This document shows positions 17,934 to 36,633 of a stretch of 64,000 bases of DNA, piece after piece. Made by a program: the position numbers and the translations under genes. Under the pieces are notes generated by a model. That model did no database searches and was not told the DNA's origin. It saw nothing but the letters and a program-made list of their open reading frames with translations. The stretch lies in the sequence record PP496443.1, one strand, 5' to 3'. Numbering within the stretch: position 1 is the stretch's first letter; every line of letters starts with the position of its first letter.

Positions 17934-18108
17934 GACCAGAGTGCCATGGTGTCCATACCTGCGTCAAAACGCCCGTTTGCCATCATGTCGGGATATGCCC
18001 AGCCATATGAGTGCTAAGTCATTGATTACCTTGACAATTTATTAGGGGGTATGTGGCCCCCTAATTCATGGAAATTCAGGTATTTTGGCTATATCTGCGT
18101 CAAAGTGC

Positions 18109-18137
18109 TTGACAAACGCTGCCAGGCCCTGTATACT
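18109..18137 (+). promoter_or_regulatory. Sigma70-type promoter
   Basis: TTGACA-N17-TATACT upstream of the ORF starting at 18201. Confidence 0.8.
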
Positions 18138-18200
18138 GCACGGGCGAGCTACTATTCCAGCCCGCTACGTCCATGCCCACCGGGGCACGAAGGAACCAAC

Positions 18201-18677
18201 ATGAAGAGCATGATTCGCCGCAAAGATGGGTTTTACACGGAGTTGTTGGCCGGTGCTAAAGACCCTGTCGCCCTTTCCAAGACTGCATTCAACCGTGGAC
18301 TGACCCGGATCGTTGCATCTATTACGAGCAGTGTTAAGCTGCGGTACGTAGTAGATTCCGAAACCGGTGATGCGGAATACCGGGTGAGAGTGAAGTTTCA
18401 GAAAAGCCAGTTGACCCGCAAGGGTACTCCGGCTATCAAGGTGGGACGGGTACTGGTTCCTGTTGATCTCGACAGCATTGCAGTACATTGCACGTGTCAG
18501 GACTTTCGATTCACCTGGTACACCTATTTGAAGAACTCTGGGCACGCTGCCGGTTGGTTCAAGCAGGTGGAGTTGAAAGGATCTGGCCGCACTCGGGAAG
18601 CTGACCACGCAGGTTGCTGCAAACACGTCGCCGGTGTACTGGCAATGGTTGAGCAGAACGTTATCGTCAAGCTGTGA
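18201..18677 (+). CDS. SWIM zinc-finger protein
   Basis: VHCTCQDF...CCKHVAGV (CxCxnCxH). Start re-called to the ATG at 18201 behind an AAGGA RBS. Confidence 0.75.
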   Translation: MKSMIRRKDGFYTELLAGAKDPVALSKTAFNRGLTRIVASITSSVKLRYVVDSETGDAEYRVRVKFQKSQLTRKGTPAIKVGRVLVPVDLDSIAVHCTCQDFRFTWYTYLKNSGHAAGWFKQVELKGSGRTREADHAGCCKHVAGVLAMVEQNVIVKL

Positions 18678-18712
18678 CCCAGATGCAGTGAGTGTTACAT
18701 GATAGAGAAAAT

Positions 18713-18748
18713 AAAACCCCACCGGTTCGCGCCGTGTGGGGTTTTTTA
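18713..18748. terminator. Bidirectional intrinsic terminator
   Basis: AAAACCCCAC...GTGGGGTTTT between convergent genes. Confidence 0.75.
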
Positions 18749-18764
18749 TGTCTGAAATTCAATC

Positions 18765-21551
18765 TTAGGTAAAGTCTTTCTGTGCCAGCACCAGTGGAAC
18801 GCCGACAGTATCCAGTGCTATCTGTGTGAACTCCTTCAATTCTGATCTGGTAAGCTTCCGGCTCAGCATCACCCCATCGTGCTCTTGTGCTACCACGATG
18901 TCTTTGTGTCGCATGTTGAACTCTATCATCACCGCTTGCTCCATACCGCAGGTGATGAAGTGCAGCAGCTTCGACTTCTCCTTTTGTGTCGTCCACCCAT
19001 TCAGCAGCTTGTCCGTGTAGAAGAATGCAACGGACCCCAGAGCATTGCGTACGCTCACTGCGCTGGCGGTAGCATTGTCTGGATCAAGCCCCGCATCCTT
19101 GATTGATCTGGACAGCGACTTGTACAGGAAGTAGTTCTGCTTGGCGATCAGGTCTCGATTGACCGGCAGCTTGACGTGTTCAGTTACCTTGTAGTCCGGG
19201 TGTACAAGGATCATGCTGGGCAGTGCCTGCATCGTCCTGATCACGGGGAAGATCAACCGGTTGGTGGTGTAGATCAAAGCGATTGCCAGCTCCATCATCT
19301 TAATCTTGAGGGCTTGCACGTGGCTCTCGTTCAACTCCAGTTCAATCGGTGCAACCAGACCACGGATCAGTTTGTCTATGGTGTCGGGCACCACGGAAGA
19401 TTTCAGGATGGACTCATGCGATGTCTTGAGGCTGGACCCGTACATGACAGAGAGGAACATCAGCTTACAGACTCCGTCGATAACCCGGATGAACTCCTTC
19501 TCCTTGCGCCACGTCTGGCCGAGCGTTTCCCCCGCGCTTTTCCATACCTGATGCAGCGCCAGTCGGTCATTCCATCTTGACTCACTTCCAGACCACTTGG
19601 GTGATCCGAACACCCCAGCTCTCCATGGGTTCCGTACCATGACCAGCGCCGACTCCAGCAGGCCTTTGAATCCGGAGTCTTCCATCTCAGTCAGCACATG
19701 ATCCGTCCACGTCTTGGATTCGTACATGCCGAAGATGGTCAACGCGCTGTCCACGTCCCGGTCCGTGAGAAACACCTTCCCGTATTCGTCTATCGTCTCA
19801 ACCAGTTCCTTGCGATACCTCTTAACCAGCCCACCGATCAACATCGGGTGGCAAGACTTGACATCGTAGTTGACGTATCCACTCTTGGTGAGGATCACCT
19901 GCTTGAGTTGGTTGGGCAGCGAACCAAAGCCCACCGGGGAGTTTATCCGGGGCGAGCGCAAGGTGGTGAAGTGATGTGCACGGTGCATGACGATCTGGTT
20001 GTGGCGGTCGCTGCTCCCTTGCTGGCAACCCAAGTTCTCCGGGTTGATCATGCGGGCCAGCGTGCGGAAGGCCCCGGAGGATATAGCTTCACCTGAGGTG
20101 TGGTGCATCCAGCTAAGCTCCGCAAGCAGGTCATTGACGGGTAGGCGTACGCTCTTGGTGGACAGCATGCGGATGTAGGACTTCACGTTGACCGGGACAA
20201 CGGGCCGGGTCGAAAGGTTTATGTTGTCGCTGATCTCCTTGTACGTCGGGTTGTTCACCACACAAGATTGCACCATGGAGACACGGCGTAACATCGTGCA
20301 CGCCTTGATCGGCACGTTCTTATCATGGAACATGTACAGCTTGCCCGGCTGGCCGGTCAGGTTATCGTTCGCCACCAGAGACTCACCGTAGGGCAGCTGA
20401 GAACTGAATACCATAACAGCCTGCCCTCGTTCCGCGAACGCGTAGATCGCATTGGGCAGTACCCGGTTGCTACCCTTCAGATTGGTTAGCCAGCGGCCCA
20501 GCGGTTTAACGTCACGAGGCCGGCCCATCAAACGCCCATGCAGGTAGGCATCAACCTTATCCATGTACGAGTCAACGAACTGTGTGACCACGGGACCAGG
20601 TTCGAACGTGAACGTCTTGTGCTTCCAGTAGTCTGCCTCCGTGGTCACGGCCATCAGCCCCATGGTCTCCAGCACAGCGCGCACGGTGTCCCAGTGATAC
20701 GTCATCTGACCTTTCTTCGATCCTTCGATGTTTCGCCAGTTGATCAGGTTGTTGAACCTCTTTTCACCTTGATGCGAGCCGAGCCCGTAGCCTTCCTTGA
20801 CCTGATCCTTCTTGATCGCGAACTGGGTATCGTGGCTGTGATCCAGATCAACATGCAGGAACCGGGATACAGACCGAGCATGGTTCAGTTCCATGGGGAA
20901 CGCCAGCTTGTTGGTCAGGTCCTTGGGGTTGAACGCAGGGTTCCATTGAAAGCCGTCCTTCGAGGTTCCCTTGTGCACGGCGGACACCAGATGTCGGGCC
21001 ATTGAGTCGCGGGAGTCGAAGTGGCCTTTGTCGTTCACCTTATCCAGCAGCATGGGGTACGCCACGACAAGGCGAGCGATCAGGAAGGCAAAGCAGTAGG
21101 CAGCAGACGGGCCGGGCGCACAGTTGCGCTCCGCCATCTTCTGGAGGAATGTCTCGTACTGATCAAGGATGAAGTAGCCCAGACCGGGGGTGACGGCTAC
21201 CGGCAGGCCAACGACGCGGCTGTCCAGCCAGCTCTTGCCACTGGGGTACAGGTTGTGCTTGGGGTTCAGCGAAGGTTCAACCACCATCATCCGCACATAG
21301 GGGACGTAGGACTGCACCCATTCAACGTTGGATTGATCTTTAGCTTCGGGGAAGTCACGGGTTACCTTTCCCACTTTGGCAATGAGATCAGTATTGAACC
21401 GCCCTACATCCTTGACCTCGGGGGCCAGCGTAGGGTTCAACCGGGCGGTAGCCTTGATGATGGGTACTTGGTCATACACTGGATACAAGTCTAGGGGCTT
21501 GGACAGTATGCCTGCATATTCCTTTTCCGAGAGTGGGGTGTAATCAGCCAT
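18765..21551 (-). CDS. Highly divergent family-A (PolA/T7 RNAP superfamily) polymerase-fold protein
   Basis: C-terminal motif A (YVNYDVKSCHPMLI), motif B (KLMFLSVMYG) and motif C (VAQEHDGVML) in correct order, preceded by PRINS...LP. No recognisable 3'-5' exonuclease motifs. Confidence 0.65.
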   Translation of the reverse strand: MADYTPLSEKEYAGILSKPLDLYPVYDQVPIIKATARLNPTLAPEVKDVGRFNTDLIAKVGKVTRDFPEAKDQSNVEWVQSYVPYVRMMVVEPSLNPKHNLYPSGKSWLDSRVVGLPVAVTPGLGYFILDQYETFLQKMAERNCAPGPSAAYCFAFLIARLVVAYPMLLDKVNDKGHFDSRDSMARHLVSAVHKGTSKDGFQWNPAFNPKDLTNKLAFPMELNHARSVSRFLHVDLDHSHDTQFAIKKDQVKEGYGLGSHQGEKRFNNLINWRNIEGSKKGQMTYHWDTVRAVLETMGLMAVTTEADYWKHKTFTFEPGPVVTQFVDSYMDKVDAYLHGRLMGRPRDVKPLGRWLTNLKGSNRVLPNAIYAFAERGQAVMVFSSQLPYGESLVANDNLTGQPGKLYMFHDKNVPIKACTMLRRVSMVQSCVVNNPTYKEISDNINLSTRPVVPVNVKSYIRMLSTKSVRLPVNDLLAELSWMHHTSGEAISSGAFRTLARMINPENLGCQQGSSDRHNQIVMHRAHHFTTLRSPRINSPVGFGSLPNQLKQVILTKSGYVNYDVKSCHPMLIGGLVKRYRKELVETIDEYGKVFLTDRDVDSALTIFGMYESKTWTDHVLTEMEDSGFKGLLESALVMVRNPWRAGVFGSPKWSGSESRWNDRLALHQVWKSAGETLGQTWRKEKEFIRVIDGVCKLMFLSVMYGSSLKTSHESILKSSVVPDTIDKLIRGLVAPIELELNESHVQALKIKMMELAIALIYTTNRLIFPVIRTMQALPSMILVHPDYKVTEHVKLPVNRDLIAKQNYFLYKSLSRSIKDAGLDPDNATASAVSVRNALGSVAFFYTDKLLNGWTTQKEKSKLLHFITCGMEQAVMIEFNMRHKDIVVAQEHDGVMLSRKLTRSELKEFTQIALDTVGVPLVLAQKDFT

Positions 21552-21600
21552 TGGATAGCTCGCGTATTACCGGAGTGAATGGAATTGGACGTTATCAGCC

Positions 21601-21608
21601 CATTTACC
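21601..21608 (-). promoter_or_regulatory. GGTAAATG box upstream of the polymerase-like gene
   Basis: CATTTACC on the plus strand, 50 nt upstream of the start. Confidence 0.5.
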
Positions 21609-21823
21609 AGACTATATACAGAGTATCTTATGGGGGTTAAAAAGGACCATCTTGCAATTATTTGGGTCATTAATTCCCTTTCATACCCTAAACCTCTATC
21701 TGTGAATACGGGGGTAGTTAGCCCTAGATACATCCCTATTACCTGTGTATATTGCCCATGTAGACTCTATTCCCCTATCGGGAAGTATAACCTCGAAAAA
21801 GGTTCCTAGCTTGCATGGGCTGG

Positions 21824-21847
21824 CCCACCCACCCCCGTGGCCCACCC
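21824..21847 (-). other. Canonical G-quadruplex-forming sequence
   Basis: Minus strand reads GGG-T-GGG-CCAC-GGGGG-T-GGG-T-GGG. Confidence 0.65.
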
Positions 21848-22048
21848 GACCGCCCGGTTAAGGCCATACCTAGGGATTCCTTTCTCCCAGAGGGACCCCC
21901 AGCCGCCCATCCTTCCCCTGCTCCTCCCTTTCCTTCATCATCTACACCCACCCAGCTATTGACTTACCATCTAGTGATCCTCCTTCCTCCAGCTTCTACA
22001 TAGGCAGTTAGTTTCCCCATGCCTCTAAGTCCCTACGCTTCATCATGC

Positions 22049-22099
22049 ACTTATGCTCTGTAGTACTGATTCCCCCACATGCCCGTGACTTATGCTCTG
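22049..22099 (+). repeat. 12-bp direct repeat ACTTATGCTCTG (iteron-like)
   Basis: Copies at 22049-22060 and 22088-22099, each followed shortly by ATTCCC. Confidence 0.6.
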
Positions 22100-22338
22100 G
22101 TGTCAGTATTCCCAGCCTCCCAGGTGAAAAGGGTGACCCGGCTTCCTGCTATGGGTATGGGGTTGTCCGGGGAATAGCGCCCGTGAATAGGGCTTCCAGG
22201 CGTGCGATATGGGGAGTTTTTCGGGGATGGATGAGTCAGTATGGCGGGGAATGGGGAATGTAGCGCCTGCGAGCTTGTAGGAGCCCGTGGTTATTGACTG
22301 GATATGCGGGACTGGGGCGGGGGTTTCCTGCGGAGGTG

Positions 22339-22372
22339 AAAAAGCCCGCACGGCTTGGGACCGATACGGGCT
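22339..22372 (-). terminator. Intrinsic terminator
   Basis: GCCCG...CGGGC stem followed by TTTTT on the minus strand, just after the 22379 stop. Confidence 0.65.
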
Positions 22373-22378
22373 CTGGTA

Positions 22379-24845: not shown

Positions 24846-25170
24846 TGGACACCTCTTTGTTGGTCAGTATCCAGCCGATGCTCAGGACCAGACGTGGCCC
24901 ATGGCACATAACCCTGTGTCGGTTGATGTCAGGACGGAACAGGTTGAAGCGACCCTTGATCACGGCTTCTGGGCATTGGAACGCGGACGTTGATCCCTTG
25001 AGCACGATGTTCAGACGCCAGTGCCGTTTACCTTCCACTGGATCAACGTGCCACGCGATGCCTTGCTTGTCCATGTACCGGATCAGATAACAATCACCAG
25101 AGCGCCATTGGAACAGCAGCATCTTGCGGTATTGCCCGGCACGACCTTGAACCCACTTGGGCCAGTTCAT
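24829..25170 (-). CDS. Hypothetical protein
   Basis: 113 aa, ATGA-coupled. Confidence 0.55.
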   Translation of the reverse strand: MNWPKWVQGRAGQYRKMLLFQWRSGDCYLIRYMDKQGIAWHVDPVEGKRHWRLNIVLKGSTSAFQCPEAVIKGRFNLFRPDINRHRVMCHGPRLVLSIGWILTNKEVSSGEAR

Positions 25171-25499
25171 TCCGAAGACTCCGCCAGTGGCTTTCCTGAT
25201 ACAACAAACCAGAAGCCGCTTTCCTCATCCACTTCGAACTCAGTCAGCGTGCCTTTGCTATTGGTCAGTAGAGAGACTCTACGAATAAGGTTAGTACGAT
25301 CGAAGAACACCTTAAGATAAGGCCCGTTATTGTCCGTGATCAACATAGGCCTGTCATAGTCGAACGGGATTATCACACCTGAAAGGGCGGAGCCTACATG
25401 AAGAGGGTAATGCTCAGGACCTTTATAGTCCTCGGGAGGATTGGTAGTTTCTTCAGGTACGTAGTAACCGAATCTACCTTTAACTACCTTGATTGACAT
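25167..25499 (-). CDS. Hypothetical protein (110 aa, MSIKVVKG...)
   Basis: Start re-called to the ATG at 25499 with a GGAGG RBS. Confidence 0.55.
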   Translation of the reverse strand: MSIKVVKGRFGYYVPEETTNPPEDYKGPEHYPLHVGSALSGVIIPFDYDRPMLITDNNGPYLKVFFDRTNLIRRVSLLTNSKGTLTEFEVDEESGFWFVVSGKPLAESSE

Positions 25500-32778: not shown

Positions 32779-34257
32779 ATGAAATCTGTAGCCGTTGACT
32801 ACCAAAAGATAGCCAAGGAATGCCAGTGTACCGAGCTGCCTTCTAAGGTAAGAGTTACGCGTGCACGGGTCTATCCAAACTTGAGGACGTGTCTACTCTT
32901 CCTCAAGTACGATGCCAAAGGTGAACTGGTACAAGCCGAGATCACTGCGCCGTACGACACGTCCACTGAGCCAAAGGTGAGGGTGCTCAAGCACCCGGAT
33001 AAGAAGTCCGACTTCCTTTCATTATATAGAGCGCTGATCCGCCACCAGATCATACCCGAGTCTATTCCGAAGAAAGGTAACGGGATTGCACCAACGCTGG
33101 AGGTCATCGGCACACTGGTGAGCCTGCTGCCGGAACGGGATGTCGAAACCTTCCGTACGCTGACCCCGGCCATCCAGACGGGCAGCGTCATGTACGTCCC
33201 TCTGGTTACGTCCCGGCCAATGCCCATGGTGCAACACTGGATACCCGTTGACCAGCATTCAGAGCTGGGCATGATCGAGCTGGTCGATACGGATAGCAAG
33301 CCTTTCCTTAATCAGTGGGTCAACAGGTTGAGCAACACCGCCACCGGTTATGTGATCTACACCCCGGAAGGCTCACACGGTCAGGAACTCGCCTGCTTCC
33401 GGGTGCCCAATGTACAAGGGGAGGAACTGTGTGTGGTCAAGAAGGTTGACTTCACCCTGACTGTTGCTCGCACACTCAAGCCGGTACTGACTGTATCCAC
33501 CAAGAGTACTCGGGCAGTGTCCCGCATTCCCCTACCCCACTATCTGATGCTGCGCAATCACCACATCAAGGTGGGCACGGTTATTTCCCTGCGTCGTAAC
33601 GACCGAGGTGGGTTGGTGTACCATGAGACGGTGGCCGAGGAAGGCATGACGCCCCTGCCGCTGTGTCCACACTGCCACAGTGGTTCTGTGCTGCGAGGTA
33701 GTAGCAATGACGTGTACTGCAATAACGATTCATGCCGAGGCCTAGCCATTGTGCGACTTCGTTATGTCTTGAACAACAAGCTGGACGTCAAGTACCTGAG
33801 CGACAATAAGGTAACAGCGCTGATCAATGACAAGCAGGACCTGTTCAGCTTGCTTAAGACACCGACGCACCAGTTACGGCACAGACCTGGCTTTGGTGCA
33901 CGTACCGTGGACGCACTGGAGGAGAAGCTTAACACTATTGCCGGTCTTCCACTGCACACACTGGCCGAGATGTCCTGCGCTTTCTACAACGTGGGCGTGC
34001 CCCCACTGGATGAGATGGTGTTCAAGAAGATCTTTTCCGTTATGTCGATTGACTACCTGAAAGCGCTGCCGTCTACCGGCAAGATGTACAGTCAGCTGCT
34101 CGACATCGAAGGTATCCGCAACAACCGCGCAGTGGCTTTCCTTGCCGGCTGGCCTGCATTTCAACAGTGGATGATAGACCTGAACGCTGCCCTACAGTCT
34201 CGTAGCGCAATCTCCTCCACGGTAAATAACCCGAAACAAATTCGAGGTGTGAAATGA
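32779..34257 (+). CDS. NAD-dependent DNA ligase (LigA)-like protein, apparently catalytically inactive
   Basis: Collinear with LigA (LEVIG, GYVIY, OB fold LKPVLTV/IKVGTVISLRR, Zn finger CPHC...YC...C, HhH PGFGARTV), but KxDG is replaced by PNLRT. No domain Ia or BRCT. Start re-called to the ATG at 32779 (GGAG RBS). Confidence 0.7.
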   Translation: MKSVAVDYQKIAKECQCTELPSKVRVTRARVYPNLRTCLLFLKYDAKGELVQAEITAPYDTSTEPKVRVLKHPDKKSDFLSLYRALIRHQIIPESIPKKGNGIAPTLEVIGTLVSLLPERDVETFRTLTPAIQTGSVMYVPLVTSRPMPMVQHWIPVDQHSELGMIELVDTDSKPFLNQWVNRLSNTATGYVIYTPEGSHGQELACFRVPNVQGEELCVVKKVDFTLTVARTLKPVLTVSTKSTRAVSRIPLPHYLMLRNHHIKVGTVISLRRNDRGGLVYHETVAEEGMTPLPLCPHCHSGSVLRGSSNDVYCNNDSCRGLAIVRLRYVLNNKLDVKYLSDNKVTALINDKQDLFSLLKTPTHQLRHRPGFGARTVDALEEKLNTIAGLPLHTLAEMSCAFYNVGVPPLDEMVFKKIFSVMSIDYLKALPSTGKMYSQLLDIEGIRNNRAVAFLAGWPAFQQWMIDLNAALQSRSAISSTVNNPKQIRGVK

Positions 34258-35018
34258 ACAATCAAAACAGAACTCGTATCGCTGTGCTTGTCGGCGGCGG
34301 TCTGGACTCACATGCGTACATGGTATTGAAAGCCGACCAGCCTCAGACAGACTTCATTCATGTGGACTACGGCCAGCGGGTTGCAGTAGCCGAGAGAAAC
34401 GCCGTGTTGCAAATGGCTGAGAAGCTGGGCATTGCCCGCAGCCGGGTGTACACGCTGATCTGCAACAAGAAGAATCACATGCGCAAGGTCAATGACGGTG
34501 TGGGTGTGTTGTTTGGCACCGGCCCGGTCGAGATGGACAATGCGTTTGTTAAGGGGCGTAACCTGTTCCTGATTCAGAAGGCCATCGAGCTGGGCTACGG
34601 TCACGTGCACTTGACGCTGACCCAAGAGCGTGGCCGGATGTTCCCCGATGCCGATCTGGCATTCGTCCAGCTGGTTGACAACCTGATGCACCGCAGTTAT
34701 GACGTGAGGGTATCCGCCCCCTACATCATGGAAGACAAGCATCGGGTGATGTTCAAGGCGTATCGGCATTGCCCCGAGTTCCTCGATATGTCTTTCACGT
34801 GCTGGGTAGGTCCTTATGTGGAATGTGGCACGTGCCCGCACTGCGTCAAGAAGGAAAAGATTCGAGCCGAGATGATCGTTGAGAAGATTGAATACGATCT
34901 CAGCAAGGATGAACGTGAGGCGCAGTGGGAGCAAGTCAAGGCAGGCTACGGCGACGCGTTGAAGCCCGCTGAGACCATCAACATGAACATTCAGGTTGTT
35001 GACGGGGAAATGAAATGA
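34254..35018 (+). CDS. queC: QueC-like PP-loop ATPase (copy 1)
   Basis: VLVGGGLDS, DYGQR...E, FVKGRNLFLI, FPDAD...F, AP and SFTCW...CGTCPHC zinc motif. Confidence 0.8.
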   Translation: MNNQNRTRIAVLVGGGLDSHAYMVLKADQPQTDFIHVDYGQRVAVAERNAVLQMAEKLGIARSRVYTLICNKKNHMRKVNDGVGVLFGTGPVEMDNAFVKGRNLFLIQKAIELGYGHVHLTLTQERGRMFPDADLAFVQLVDNLMHRSYDVRVSAPYIMEDKHRVMFKAYRHCPEFLDMSFTCWVGPYVECGTCPHCVKKEKIRAEMIVEKIEYDLSKDEREAQWEQVKAGYGDALKPAETINMNIQVVDGEMK

Positions 35019-35814: not shown

Positions 35815-36633
35815 ATGACCACTACACCCCCTAAGATTATCGTCGCATTCAGCGCTGGCACAGATTCAACCACAGCGGCCTATTACTATCGCAAGCTCGG
35901 GTATCAGGTTACGCTGGCTGTCTTCGATGATGGCCCCTGCAACGATCCAAAGGATCCTCTGTACGATCCTAACAAGCCGGAAGATCTTACCAATTTCTCC
36001 GACGAGTTCTACGATTACGTACGAATCCATCAAGAACACACTGAGGGTCACCTGCAGTTCGACTTTGTGGAGATCCGTTACCCACAGCTCCCGTTGTTGG
36101 AAGCCAACAAGACGGCTAAACCTGGTCGGGACAACGCGGCGGCAGCCGAAGCTGACGGCTTGGGGTTCTGGGTAGGCTTCAAAGGTCTGATGGCGATGAT
36201 GCTGATGAGCCACGGCGCGGCCAACGGTTACGAGGCTGTAGTCTTCGGCCACATGCCGTACAACAACCATTACGAAGATGAGCTGCCGCAGAACTTCGAG
36301 CTGCTGCGCCAGTACATGGTTACGGCCTATGGCAGCCGAGTGGAAATTCCTCAGATCTACCACCCGTTCTATCGACCGAATTTCGATACCAAGGAAAAGG
36401 TTATTGAGCTGGCGCAGGCAATCGGCGTGCCCTTGCGAGATACCTATTCGTGCCGCCGAGGTGAAGTAGAAACCCGAGGTATCCTATTGCCACTTCTGCG
36501 TGGTGGTAAATCCAACTACGTGAGCCCCACCTACCGCTGGAAGCATTGTGGTACGTGTGAGAACTGTGTCGAACGCAAGCGAGCCTTCGCGGCGCTGGGC
36601 ATGAAAGATCCTGCCCCTTATATGGAACATTGA
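35815..36633 (+). CDS. queC: QueC-like PP-loop ATPase (copy 2)
   Basis: IVAFSAGTDST, HPF...TKEKVI, TYSC and HCGTCENCVERKRAF. Confidence 0.8.
   Translation: MTTTPPKIIVAFSAGTDSTTAAYYYRKLGYQVTLAVFDDGPCNDPKDPLYDPNKPEDLTNFSDEFYDYVRIHQEHTEGHLQFDFVEIRYPQLPLLEANKTAKPGRDNAAAAEADGLGFWVGFKGLMAMMLMSHGAANGYEAVVFGHMPYNNHYEDELPQNFELLRQYMVTAYGSRVEIPQIYHPFYRPNFDTKEKVIELAQAIGVPLRDTYSCRRGEVETRGILLPLLRGGKSNYVSPTYRWKHCGTCENCVERKRAFAALGMKDPAPYMEH

Follow-up and report, generated by a model that had tools for sequence, protein, structure and literature searches.

Lauda_00163, a probable accessory polymerase-like protein without a proofreading exonuclease in the Pseudomonas putida jumbo phage vB_PpuM-Lauda

Introduction

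The described systems that appear to offer the best precedents or functional analogues for the phage gene Lauda_00163 are two groups of divergent polymerases, divPolA2 and TV-Pol. Lauda_00163 is an open reading frame (ORF) at positions 18765..21551 on the minus strand of a 64,000-nucleotide stretch of sequence record PP496443.1, referred to below as the window (window coordinate = record coordinate minus 124,000). It has an ATG start and encodes 928 amino acids followed by a stop codon, and its product is annotated as 'hypothetical protein'. The record is the 201,030-bp genome of Pseudomonas phage vB_PpuM-Lauda, a P. putida jumbo myovirus from the CEPEST collection that belongs to genus cluster G3.

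The divPolA2 group of barbaviruses, delimited by PSI-BLAST (Yutin et al. 2024, Virol J, PMC11348598), is represented by AUR84708 of Vibrio phage 1.063.O and has been given the role 'repair or RNAP', that is, repair or RNA polymerase (RNAP). TV-Pol (Iyer, Abhiman and Aravind 2008, Biol Direct, PMC2579912) consists of a minimal PolA core that is never linked to a nuclease and is predicted to be a primase-polymerase. Canonical family A comprises 19 subfamilies, and all the phage PolAs among them keep their exonuclease (Czernecki et al. 2023, PMC10201439).

We propose that Lauda_00163 acts as an accessory enzyme of polymerase type that lacks a proofreading exonuclease, in which a very divergent Klenow-type palm and fingers would occupy approximately residues 530–928; this reading has in our estimate a probability of about 0.6. 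The gene itself is real and conserved, experiences strong purifying selection, and passes between related phages as a cassette replaced in situ; its fold, catalytic competence, substrate and role we infer. We regard the observation as real because key residues are invariant across four lineages and evidence on the fold accompanies them.

Distribution of the gene and its homologues

The ORF is intact in nine P. putida jumbo phage records, in which three allele classes can be distinguished; the copies in eight G3 phages are 97–100% identical, and the allele of phage Peetri is 32–38% identical. More distant members were reached through the neighbouring ATPase, which is ∼40% identical in the nearest outgroup, the Vibrio phages GR11A and GR7B. 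The homologues in these phages, GR11A_00066 and GR7B_00126 (617 and 618 residues), were located by synteny and sit in the same helicase...RNase H...ATPase–capsid block as Lauda_00163, which is a single-copy gene within that block. Their pairwise identity with Lauda_00163 is ∼22%; both have a GME(Q/S)A...EHDG block at the C-terminus, and careful alignment brings out the whole series of motifs described below. Across the family the four lineages share ∼20–38% identity.

Wider searches with Lauda_00163 recovered little else. A word-indexed search of 5.8e9 proteins matched only its own cluster, a phmmer search of all 1.84e9 representatives matched that cluster and the Peetri allele, and pattern scans of IMG/VR and the JGI metagenomes gave no further relatives; the two Vibrio homologues likewise yielded no additional members in the word-indexed search or the pattern scans. 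No public sequencing run is listed for the gene. A sequence-only reading of the window had called the protein an orphan, a description that does not strictly hold given the nine phage records and the two Vibrio homologues. The ORF that it delimited, and the three strings to which it drew attention (YDVKSCHP, KxxFxxxxYG and EHDG), are all present.

Domain organisation and conserved residues

The C-terminal ∼409 residues of Lauda_00163 (520–928; 18768..19994, on the minus strand as are all of the coding features given here) are predicted to form a Klenow-type domain with a palm and enlarged fingers. The first conserved block, RSPR...LPNQLKQVI (residues 532–553; 19893..19958), precedes the motif A candidate and resembles TGR...PNLQNIP; P534, F542, K550 and Q551 are invariant within it. 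The candidate for motif A itself, YvNYDvkSCHP (residues 559–569; 19845..19877), includes the string YDVKSCHP at residues 562–569 and has Y559, N561, Y562, D563 and S566 invariant. Five residues beyond the motif-A Asp, members of the family have His or Gln.

A long predicted helix has at its C-terminal end the motif B candidate, CKLMFLSVMYGS (residues 695–706; 19434..19469), which contains KLMFLSVMYG at residues 696–705, a string that fits the pattern KxxFxxxxYG; K696 and G705 are invariant, and the Vibrio members have Phe in place of the Y704 of the Pseudomonas alleles. At position B3 of this motif the Vibrio members have Tyr and the Pseudomonas alleles either Leu or Ile; of these residues, Leu and Tyr are known variants among PolAs at this site (PMC10201439). 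Further along the chain, a predicted helix HFITCGMEQA (residues 864–873; 18933..18962), with invariant G869, M870, E871 and A873, gives the pattern HxxxxGMExA, which resembles motif 6 of Pol I (N..QG.AAD). The candidate for motif C, IVVAQEHDGVM (residues 886–896; 18864..18896), is a predicted β-hairpin with the invariant residues E890-H891-D892-G893 (EHDG) at its turn. The last block is the C-terminal strand VPLVLAQKDF (residues 918–927; 18771..18800), in which V918, L922, K925 and F927 are invariant and which is comparable with the Pol I C-terminus, VPLxVE..G..W.

The four-lineage alignment has 34 invariant positions among the 409 of the catalytic region, and five of the six key residues fall on them (D563, K696, G705, H891 and D892; hypergeometric p = 1.7e-5, or p = 5.7e-4 if the key residues are counted as three independent sites). 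D563 lies on a β-prone stretch followed by a helix, and D892 at a hairpin turn, in the secondary structure of a model made with AlphaFold2 (AF2). As aligned, both putative metal-ligand Asp residues, D563 of motif A and D892 of motif C, are present in four lineages. The GR11A homologue looks more canonical: its GSR-x3-NPIQSL lies 37 residues before INYDIESSQL, counted from GSR to the motif-A Asp, the same as the spacing of R668 and D705 in Klenow, and its motif A is separated by 47 residues from motif B (K-IIL-Y-ALV-FG), the same as D475 to K522 in the DNA polymerase (DNAP) of T7.

The N-terminal ∼519 residues (19995..21551) have no recognisable domain and no conserved exonuclease motifs. This part is partly common to the shorter Vibrio homologues, with D307, G376 and P387 invariant, and its predicted local distance difference test score (pLDDT) in the AF2 model is mostly below 50. 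No domain was found by Pfam in the whole protein or in its halves, which bears out the earlier description of the N-terminus as unrecognisable. A 3′–5′ exonuclease was likewise not seen, there being no PF01612 match and no set of DxE, Nx3(F/Y)D and Yx3D motifs that is recognisable in Lauda_00163 or conserved among its homologues; the same reading had reported that Exo I, II and III are lacking. A vestigial exonuclease fold may be present in the β-rich residues 300–410.

Predicted structure and a model for the active site

The Atlas ESM model of Lauda_00163 has a pLDDT of 0.50, and PF00476 clusters account for six of the ten structural-neighbour rows listed for it, with template-modelling scores (TM) by query of 0.32–0.40 over 379–474 aligned residues. 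In the embedding comparison the nearest neighbours of the Peetri allele (0.94) and of GR11A_00066 (0.96) are unnamed clusters of ∼460–700 residues, a score of at least 0.95 being reached by ∼1% of shuffled proteins. The predicted folds of these neighbours match 'family A palm domain' proteins, PF00940 and Pol I, with TM values of 0.45–0.71. The nearest named family is PF00476 in all three of the lineages compared, at a weak score of 0.77–0.78.

The AF2 model of the full-length protein is poor overall (pLDDT 43), with values of 60–80 over much of residues 570–920. Its secondary structure elements follow the order of Pol I: a long helix that ends in K..YG, further helices, a hairpin and the GMEQA helix, and after these a hairpin with His-Asp at the turn, a helix and the terminal strand. 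We compared this model with 48,161 PDB representatives by means of the VIA aligner, which is independent of Foldseek. All of the long alignments, covering 182–216 residues between about 530 and 928 of the model, are to Pol I-family DNA polymerases or to N4 RNAPII, and such entries make up six of the top 17; the others cover 50–115 residues, mostly in helical segments. The six are apicoplast PolA (9qsc, VIA score 6.1), Pol nu (4xvi, 6.0), Klenow (1d9d, 6.0), M. smegmatis Pol1 (6vde, 5.8), N4 RNAPII (6dt7, 5.7) and Aquifex Pol I (8jrb, 5.6). For Klenow the alignment pairs residues 529–927 of the model with 518–928 of the chain and reaches both C-termini. VIA also aligned 232 residues of T7 RNAP with the model, and residues ∼145–237 of HIV-1 reverse transcriptase, which include the YMDD hairpin, align with residues ∼852–928 of Lauda_00163. 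When the same model was used in an Atlas shape search, the matches were small phage proteins (TM 0.63–0.68), a PF00476 cluster (TM 0.58, query residues 571–926) and DUF5906/VapE/D5_N proteins.

With the conserved residues and these models taken together, a Klenow-type polymerase domain at approximately residues 530–928 seems likely. Such a domain would belong to the Pol I/T7 RNAP/TV-Pol superfamily, and its catalytic metals would be held by two carboxylates, those of D563, with which the motif-A strand ends, and of D892, where the motif-C hairpin turns. The incoming nucleotide would be touched by K696 and Y704 of a helix resembling the O-helix, and the N-terminal part of ∼520 residues would stand in for the usual exonuclease and thumb scaffold.

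Comparison with known polymerase sequences

Several results weigh against the assignment, most of them from sequence statistics. Pfam searches at E ≤ 10 with whole proteins and halves from all four lineages returned nothing relevant and no PF00476, whereas the positive control, Lauda_00226 of the same phage, scores PF00476 at 3e-38. No match was found by hmmsearch of the family profiles against the PDB, and hhalign comparisons with T7 DNAP, T7 RNAP, Lauda_00226, a 63-sequence PolA profile and divPolA2 gave P = 0.07–0.5. An ordered five-block position-specific scoring matrix (TGR, A, B, motif 6 and C) scored z = −0.2 to 1.1 against shuffled sequences and picked sites other than the proposed motifs, and the local profile–profile score of 12.4 bits falls inside the column-permuted null of 13.1 ± 1.9. 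The motif resemblance of Lauda_00163 to canonical PolA is thus not above chance by these measures.

Particular residues and models add to these objections. The TGR-like Arg (SPR or GSR) is nearby but does not form one alignable column across the four lineages, the Arg of the motif-B RxxxK (K−4) is absent in every lineage, and the steric-gate Glu is absent in the family. Because Lauda and Peetri again become similar at the nucleotide level from residue ∼863 onwards, a motif C common to these two does not count as independent evidence. In an AF2 model of the C-terminal part alone the palm sheets are unformed and no polymerase was matched by Atlas or VIA. Foldseek, a comparison that the sequence-only reading had proposed, found nothing significant for the Lauda_00163 models in the PDB, the AFDB clusters or the Atlas.

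Searches of PHROGs and of PDB sequences also gave no match to Lauda_00163, and a sub-threshold Pfam match to YycE-like_C was disregarded. When the four-lineage alignment was compared by hhalign with the family A reference profile (63 sequences, <70% identity), the best local match placed motif B on motif B, with a P value of 0.14; the pattern K.{7}YG occurs twice within Lauda_00163. The claim of a family A palm and fingers without an exonuclease therefore stands in part: predicted-structure neighbours and conserved catalytic-type residues favour it at moderate confidence, and no sequence statistic supports it.

The alternative that survives best is that Lauda_00163 is no polymerase, its motifs being chance resemblances and the conserved Asp, Lys and His-Asp serving some other function in a mostly helical protein. 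This would fit the uniformly null sequence-statistical tests, the commonness of each motif string on its own, and the low confidence of the models, whose top structural matches are mostly generic helical bundles. We nevertheless consider it unlikely. One fold family is reached by three partly independent approaches (the ESM model, neighbours in embedding space for three lineages, and VIA applied to the AF2 model); the occurrence of six Pol I-family or N4 RNAPII entries in the top 17 of 48,161 is implausible as chance; and the invariant residues coincide exactly with the predicted catalytic positions.

Accessory status and substrate

The Lauda genome encodes a separate replicase, Lauda_00226, a protein of 1087 residues with PF00476 (E 3e-38) and a 3′–5′ exonuclease domain, as had been anticipated in the suggestion that Lauda_00163 is not the main replicase. 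It also encodes a Toprim primase, DnaB, SSB (single-stranded DNA-binding protein), a clamp-loader-like protein, ligases, RNase H and topoisomerase II. Because the phage has a PolA-plus-exonuclease replicase, a primase and the DnaB helicase, we regard Lauda_00163 as accessory. Over the polymerase domain, the Lauda replicase has 52% identity to that of GR11A, compared with ∼22% for Lauda_00163 and its GR11A homologue. Since the phage replicates with a separate canonical enzyme, the role of Lauda_00163 would be one of specialised template-dependent synthesis, whether in repair, in gap filling or in initiation and priming.

The nature of the product can be approached through the residues that discriminate between substrates. 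T7 RNAP requires Tyr639 in motif B, and ribonucleotides are selected by this Tyr together with a small residue after the motif-A Asp; five residues beyond that Asp, PolA DNAPs have Glu and T7 RNAP has Gly. We lean towards deoxynucleotides because of the His or Gln after the motif-A Asp, the Phe that the Vibrio members have in motif B, and the lack of a repeated promoter, and on these grounds DNA synthesis appears somewhat more likely than RNA synthesis. With regard to promoters, no repeated promoter-like word was found in the 201 kb and no 12-mer occurs more than five times, although a scan for repeated words of 12–16 nt would overlook promoters that are weakly conserved or few. The commonest word families allowing one mismatch are mostly of an acidic-repeat type and none is promoter-like. 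A T7-like promoter family was accordingly rejected for Lauda, with neither a repeated 12–16-mer nor a promoter-like word family present, and the lack of a repeated phage promoter in the 201 kb speaks against a general transcriptase of the T7 style. The sequence-only reading had put forward a primase, a single-subunit RNAP or an origin initiator; Lauda_00163 may have a more specialised role as an RNAP or primase.

A further possibility is that Lauda_00163 represents a new lineage of single-subunit DNA-dependent RNA polymerase, comparable with T7 RNAP, N4 vRNAP and N4 RNAPII, which would transcribe a small set of genes or make replication primers from its own leader. N4 RNAPII is among the long VIA alignments, but the VIA scores are slightly higher for PolA DNAPs than for RNAPs. 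The 201 kb contain no promoter-like repeated word, and a sigma-like factor encoded in the genome, recognised by a weak Sigma70_r2 match, implies use of the host RNAP. The Vibrio members have Phe at the equivalent of Tyr639, and the residue after the motif-A Asp is a bulky His or Gln rather than Gly. No RPOL_N or specificity-loop signal was found by Pfam in any lineage; for Lauda_00163 itself, Pfam and hhalign against T7 RNAP gave no sign of PF00940, RPOL_N or a specificity loop. Scans of viral contigs for diverse single-subunit RNAP and PolA references returned close T7 relatives only. We judge such an RNAP to be quite unlikely, and retain the accessory, exonuclease-less Klenow-type enzyme as the preferred reading.

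Allele replacement and selection

Nucleotide comparisons with Peetri and with a second phage, SKa-4, place Lauda_00163 in an island of divergence or recombination at 18050..21980, to which no strand is assigned. Lauda and Peetri share no nucleotide similarity between ∼21980 and ∼18965, a stretch that begins ∼430 nt before the start codon and ends at residue ∼863, where similarity returns; the flanks on both sides are 78–92% identical. Between Lauda and SKa-4 identity is 88–97% from ∼21500 to ∼18050, compared with ∼99–100% in the flanks. For Lauda_00163 against its SKa-4 counterpart the synonymous divergence (dS) is 0.27 and the ratio of nonsynonymous to synonymous divergence (dN/dS) is 0.05, whereas the measured flanking genes have dS values of 0.00–0.04. 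These comparisons indicate a strongly constrained gene within an island that was imported by recombination and that has no fewer than three deep allele classes; rapid positive selection was considered and rejected on the dN/dS of 0.05. The island resembles the in situ 'DNAP swapping' of Yutin et al. (PMC11348598).

Lauda_00162 (18201-18677, plus strand), a small convergent gene downstream, has dS 0.157 and dN/dS 0.035 against SKa-4; it lies within the SKa-4 island and outside the Peetri island. A second and stronger island between Lauda and SKa-4 occurs at 24944-25494, where the genes Lauda_00168–00170 show 52–74% identity with many gaps and are flanked by DNA that is 100% identical in the two phages.

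Allele swapping of this kind would be accounted for if the polymerase fold had been repurposed, Lauda_00163 being a catalytically altered or template-independent nucleotidyl-transferase, or a decoy or sensor-evasion factor in conflict between phage and host or between phages; and although three deep allele classes in otherwise near-identical genomes, a dS ten times that of the flanks, the strong restriction of G3 phages by P. putida prophages (bioRxiv 10.1101/2024.03.26.586772), the attribution of DNAP swapping to defence escape or replicon incompatibility (PMC11348598), and the missing O-helix Arg and steric-gate Glu can all be cited in favour, we think this very unlikely, in that neither the two putative metal-binding Asp residues nor the O-helix Lys varies in any lineage, the dN/dS of 0.05 signifies ordinary purifying rather than diversifying selection, and no PADLOC or other anti-defence evidence came up, none having been looked for.

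The family to which Lauda_00163 belongs diverges far more than the co-resident replicase, yet is constrained within each allele. As a hotspot of in situ allele replacement the gene bears on the question of why related phages swap polymerase genes, and P. putida with the CEPEST phages, being laboratory systems, offers a tractable case, in which two natural alleles that are ∼35% identical occur in nearly isogenic backgrounds.

The non-coding leader

Lauda_00163 is preceded by a gap of 827 nt (21552..22378, minus strand) which we take to be a non-coding leader, because the insertions and deletions that distinguish it from Peetri are 1, 4, 7 and 8 nt in length. At its distal end is a hairpin that resembles a terminator and belongs to the upstream gene (22338-22378). 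Next come sense-strand runs of C (∼22150-22340), a pair of 26-nt direct repeats (22049-22074 and 22088-22113; 77% identical, with a spacing of 39 nt), sense-strand runs of G (∼21820-22000), and an AT-rich stretch with two sigma70-like promoter matches (21552-21800). The region 21501-21800 (record 145501-145800), which adjoins the start codon on its upstream side, is the only 300-nt window in the 201-kb genome with a GC content below 43%. GC skew inverts sharply within the leader (+0.5 to −0.7), the G-runs on its two sides being on opposite strands, and the 26-nt repeats, which lie in the portion that Peetri also has, are at the centre of this inversion.

A leader of 750–1090 nt precedes the gene in all four lineages, the gaps before the Vibrio homologues, in which no gene is annotated, measuring ∼1090 nt in GR11A (L198:2178-3263) and ∼750 nt in GR7B (L201:2490-3239); the GR11A gap has the same polarity on the sense strand as the Lauda leader, C-rich and then G-rich. 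Three candidate properties were rejected: a structured RNA (fold z = +1.4, no Rfam match), a special conservation of the distal 400 nt (the 89% identity to Peetri equals the genomic background of 78–92%), and an origin signal in the genome-wide cumulative GC skew, for which the curve is flat.

These features are compatible with a promoter or regulatory region or with an origin-like element, the case for an origin or other cis-element being circumstantial. It is conceivable, though we think it improbable, that Lauda_00163 and its leader form a self-contained initiation module, in which a prim-pol-like or RNAP-like enzyme acts on its cognate upstream cis element, this being the genome's AT-richest site with the opposed G-runs and the 26-nt repeats beside it. 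If so, an enzyme and element that are swapped together would set the specificity of replicon or expression between co-infecting jumbo phages, in a manner reminiscent of plasmid incompatibility.

Genomic neighbourhood and other genes

The immediate neighbours of Lauda_00163 are small hypothetical genes, the ATPase and capsid genes, with the helicase and RNase H several kb away. Two other Lauda genes carry labels related to replication. For Lauda_00237 (record 198959-199606; 215 residues), labelled 'DNA polymerase', a Pfam search gave nothing at E ≤ 0.001, and Lauda_00132 (record 111722-117472; 1915 residues), labelled 'DNA helicase', has only an SNF2-related domain at residues ∼929–1364 and ∼900 N-terminal residues without a domain assignment. 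The window also contains two QueC-like genes, at 34254-35018 and 35815-36633, and a QueE-like radical-SAM gene and a GTP cyclohydrolase are found elsewhere in the Lauda genome (record 192820-193791 and 195760-196500). The similarity of these genes to QueC, QueE and GTP cyclohydrolase suggests that the DNA of the phage carries a 7-deazaguanine modification.

Comparison with known systems

In common with canonical family A enzymes, Lauda_00163 has, in prediction, the fold of residues 530–928, and it has the order of TGR-like block, motif A, motif B, motif-6-like helix and motif C, and invariant Asp, Lys, Gly and His-Asp at the expected places. In contrast to them it has Gly rather than Glu after His-Asp and large insertions in the fingers, and its family lies below every sequence-detection threshold for canonical family A. 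We place the family outside the 19 PolA subfamilies, because all phage PolAs keep the exonuclease (PMC10201439).

The T7-like and N4 single-subunit RNAPs share with Lauda_00163 the superfamily fold, as predicted, and similar positions of motifs A, B and C along the chain. The T7-like enzymes are set apart by PF00940 and RPOL_N signals and a phage promoter family, which Lauda_00163 lacks, and by the discriminating Tyr, for which two Vibrio lineages have Phe; the residue after the motif-A Asp is again bulky. N4 vRNAP nevertheless provides a precedent for a member of this superfamily that is recognisable by short motifs only.

TV-Pol, like Lauda_00163, sometimes has an uncharacterised N-terminal globular domain, and clusters with DUF5906, VapE and D5_N, the domain types found in fusions of TV-Pol with a D5 helicase, recur among the structural neighbours of the Lauda_00163 family. 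The matches of the family to clusters that bear TV-Pol itself are weak (TM 0.16–0.37). The two Asp residues are present in both, but the RxxxK fingers motif of TV-Pol is reduced to K in Lauda_00163 and the hairpin Arg that is invariant in TV-Pol is not alignable. The D5-like helicase fusion and the integrase/resolvase or mobile-element context of TV-Pol are absent around Lauda_00163.

With divPolA2 there are parallels in layout. Both are encoded beside a regular DNAP and lack a 3′–5′ exonuclease; both have an N-terminal part (globular in divPolA2) without detectable similarity and keep the palm catalytic residues; and both give structural matches to PolA DNAPs and to RNAPs, these being mitochondrial and N4 enzymes in the case of divPolA2. 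The spacing from Arg to Asp is 28 in each (GGR...VYDFK and SPR...NYDVK), and each has CK...Y in motif B. No significant similarity was seen, however, between AUR84708 and the four-lineage alignment (hhalign P = 0.2). divPolA2 is 430 residues long, compared with 617–1010 in the Lauda_00163 family, has FDE where Lauda_00163 has EHDG, and has short fingers, with ∼40 residues from motif A to motif B, compared with 47–200. It is also found in a variable neighbourhood, sometimes with paralogues (PMC11348598), whereas Lauda_00163 is single-copy in a syntenic block.

On this comparison we file Lauda_00163 as a very divergent, exonuclease-less variant of the PolA superfamily and do not assign it to any named family. 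If the fold holds, it would add one more very divergent lineage to the Pol I-superfamily enzymes that lack an exonuclease, carried by jumbo phages that have a full replisome, and would join divPolA1, divPolA2 and TV-Pol as a sign that phages retain 'second polymerases'.

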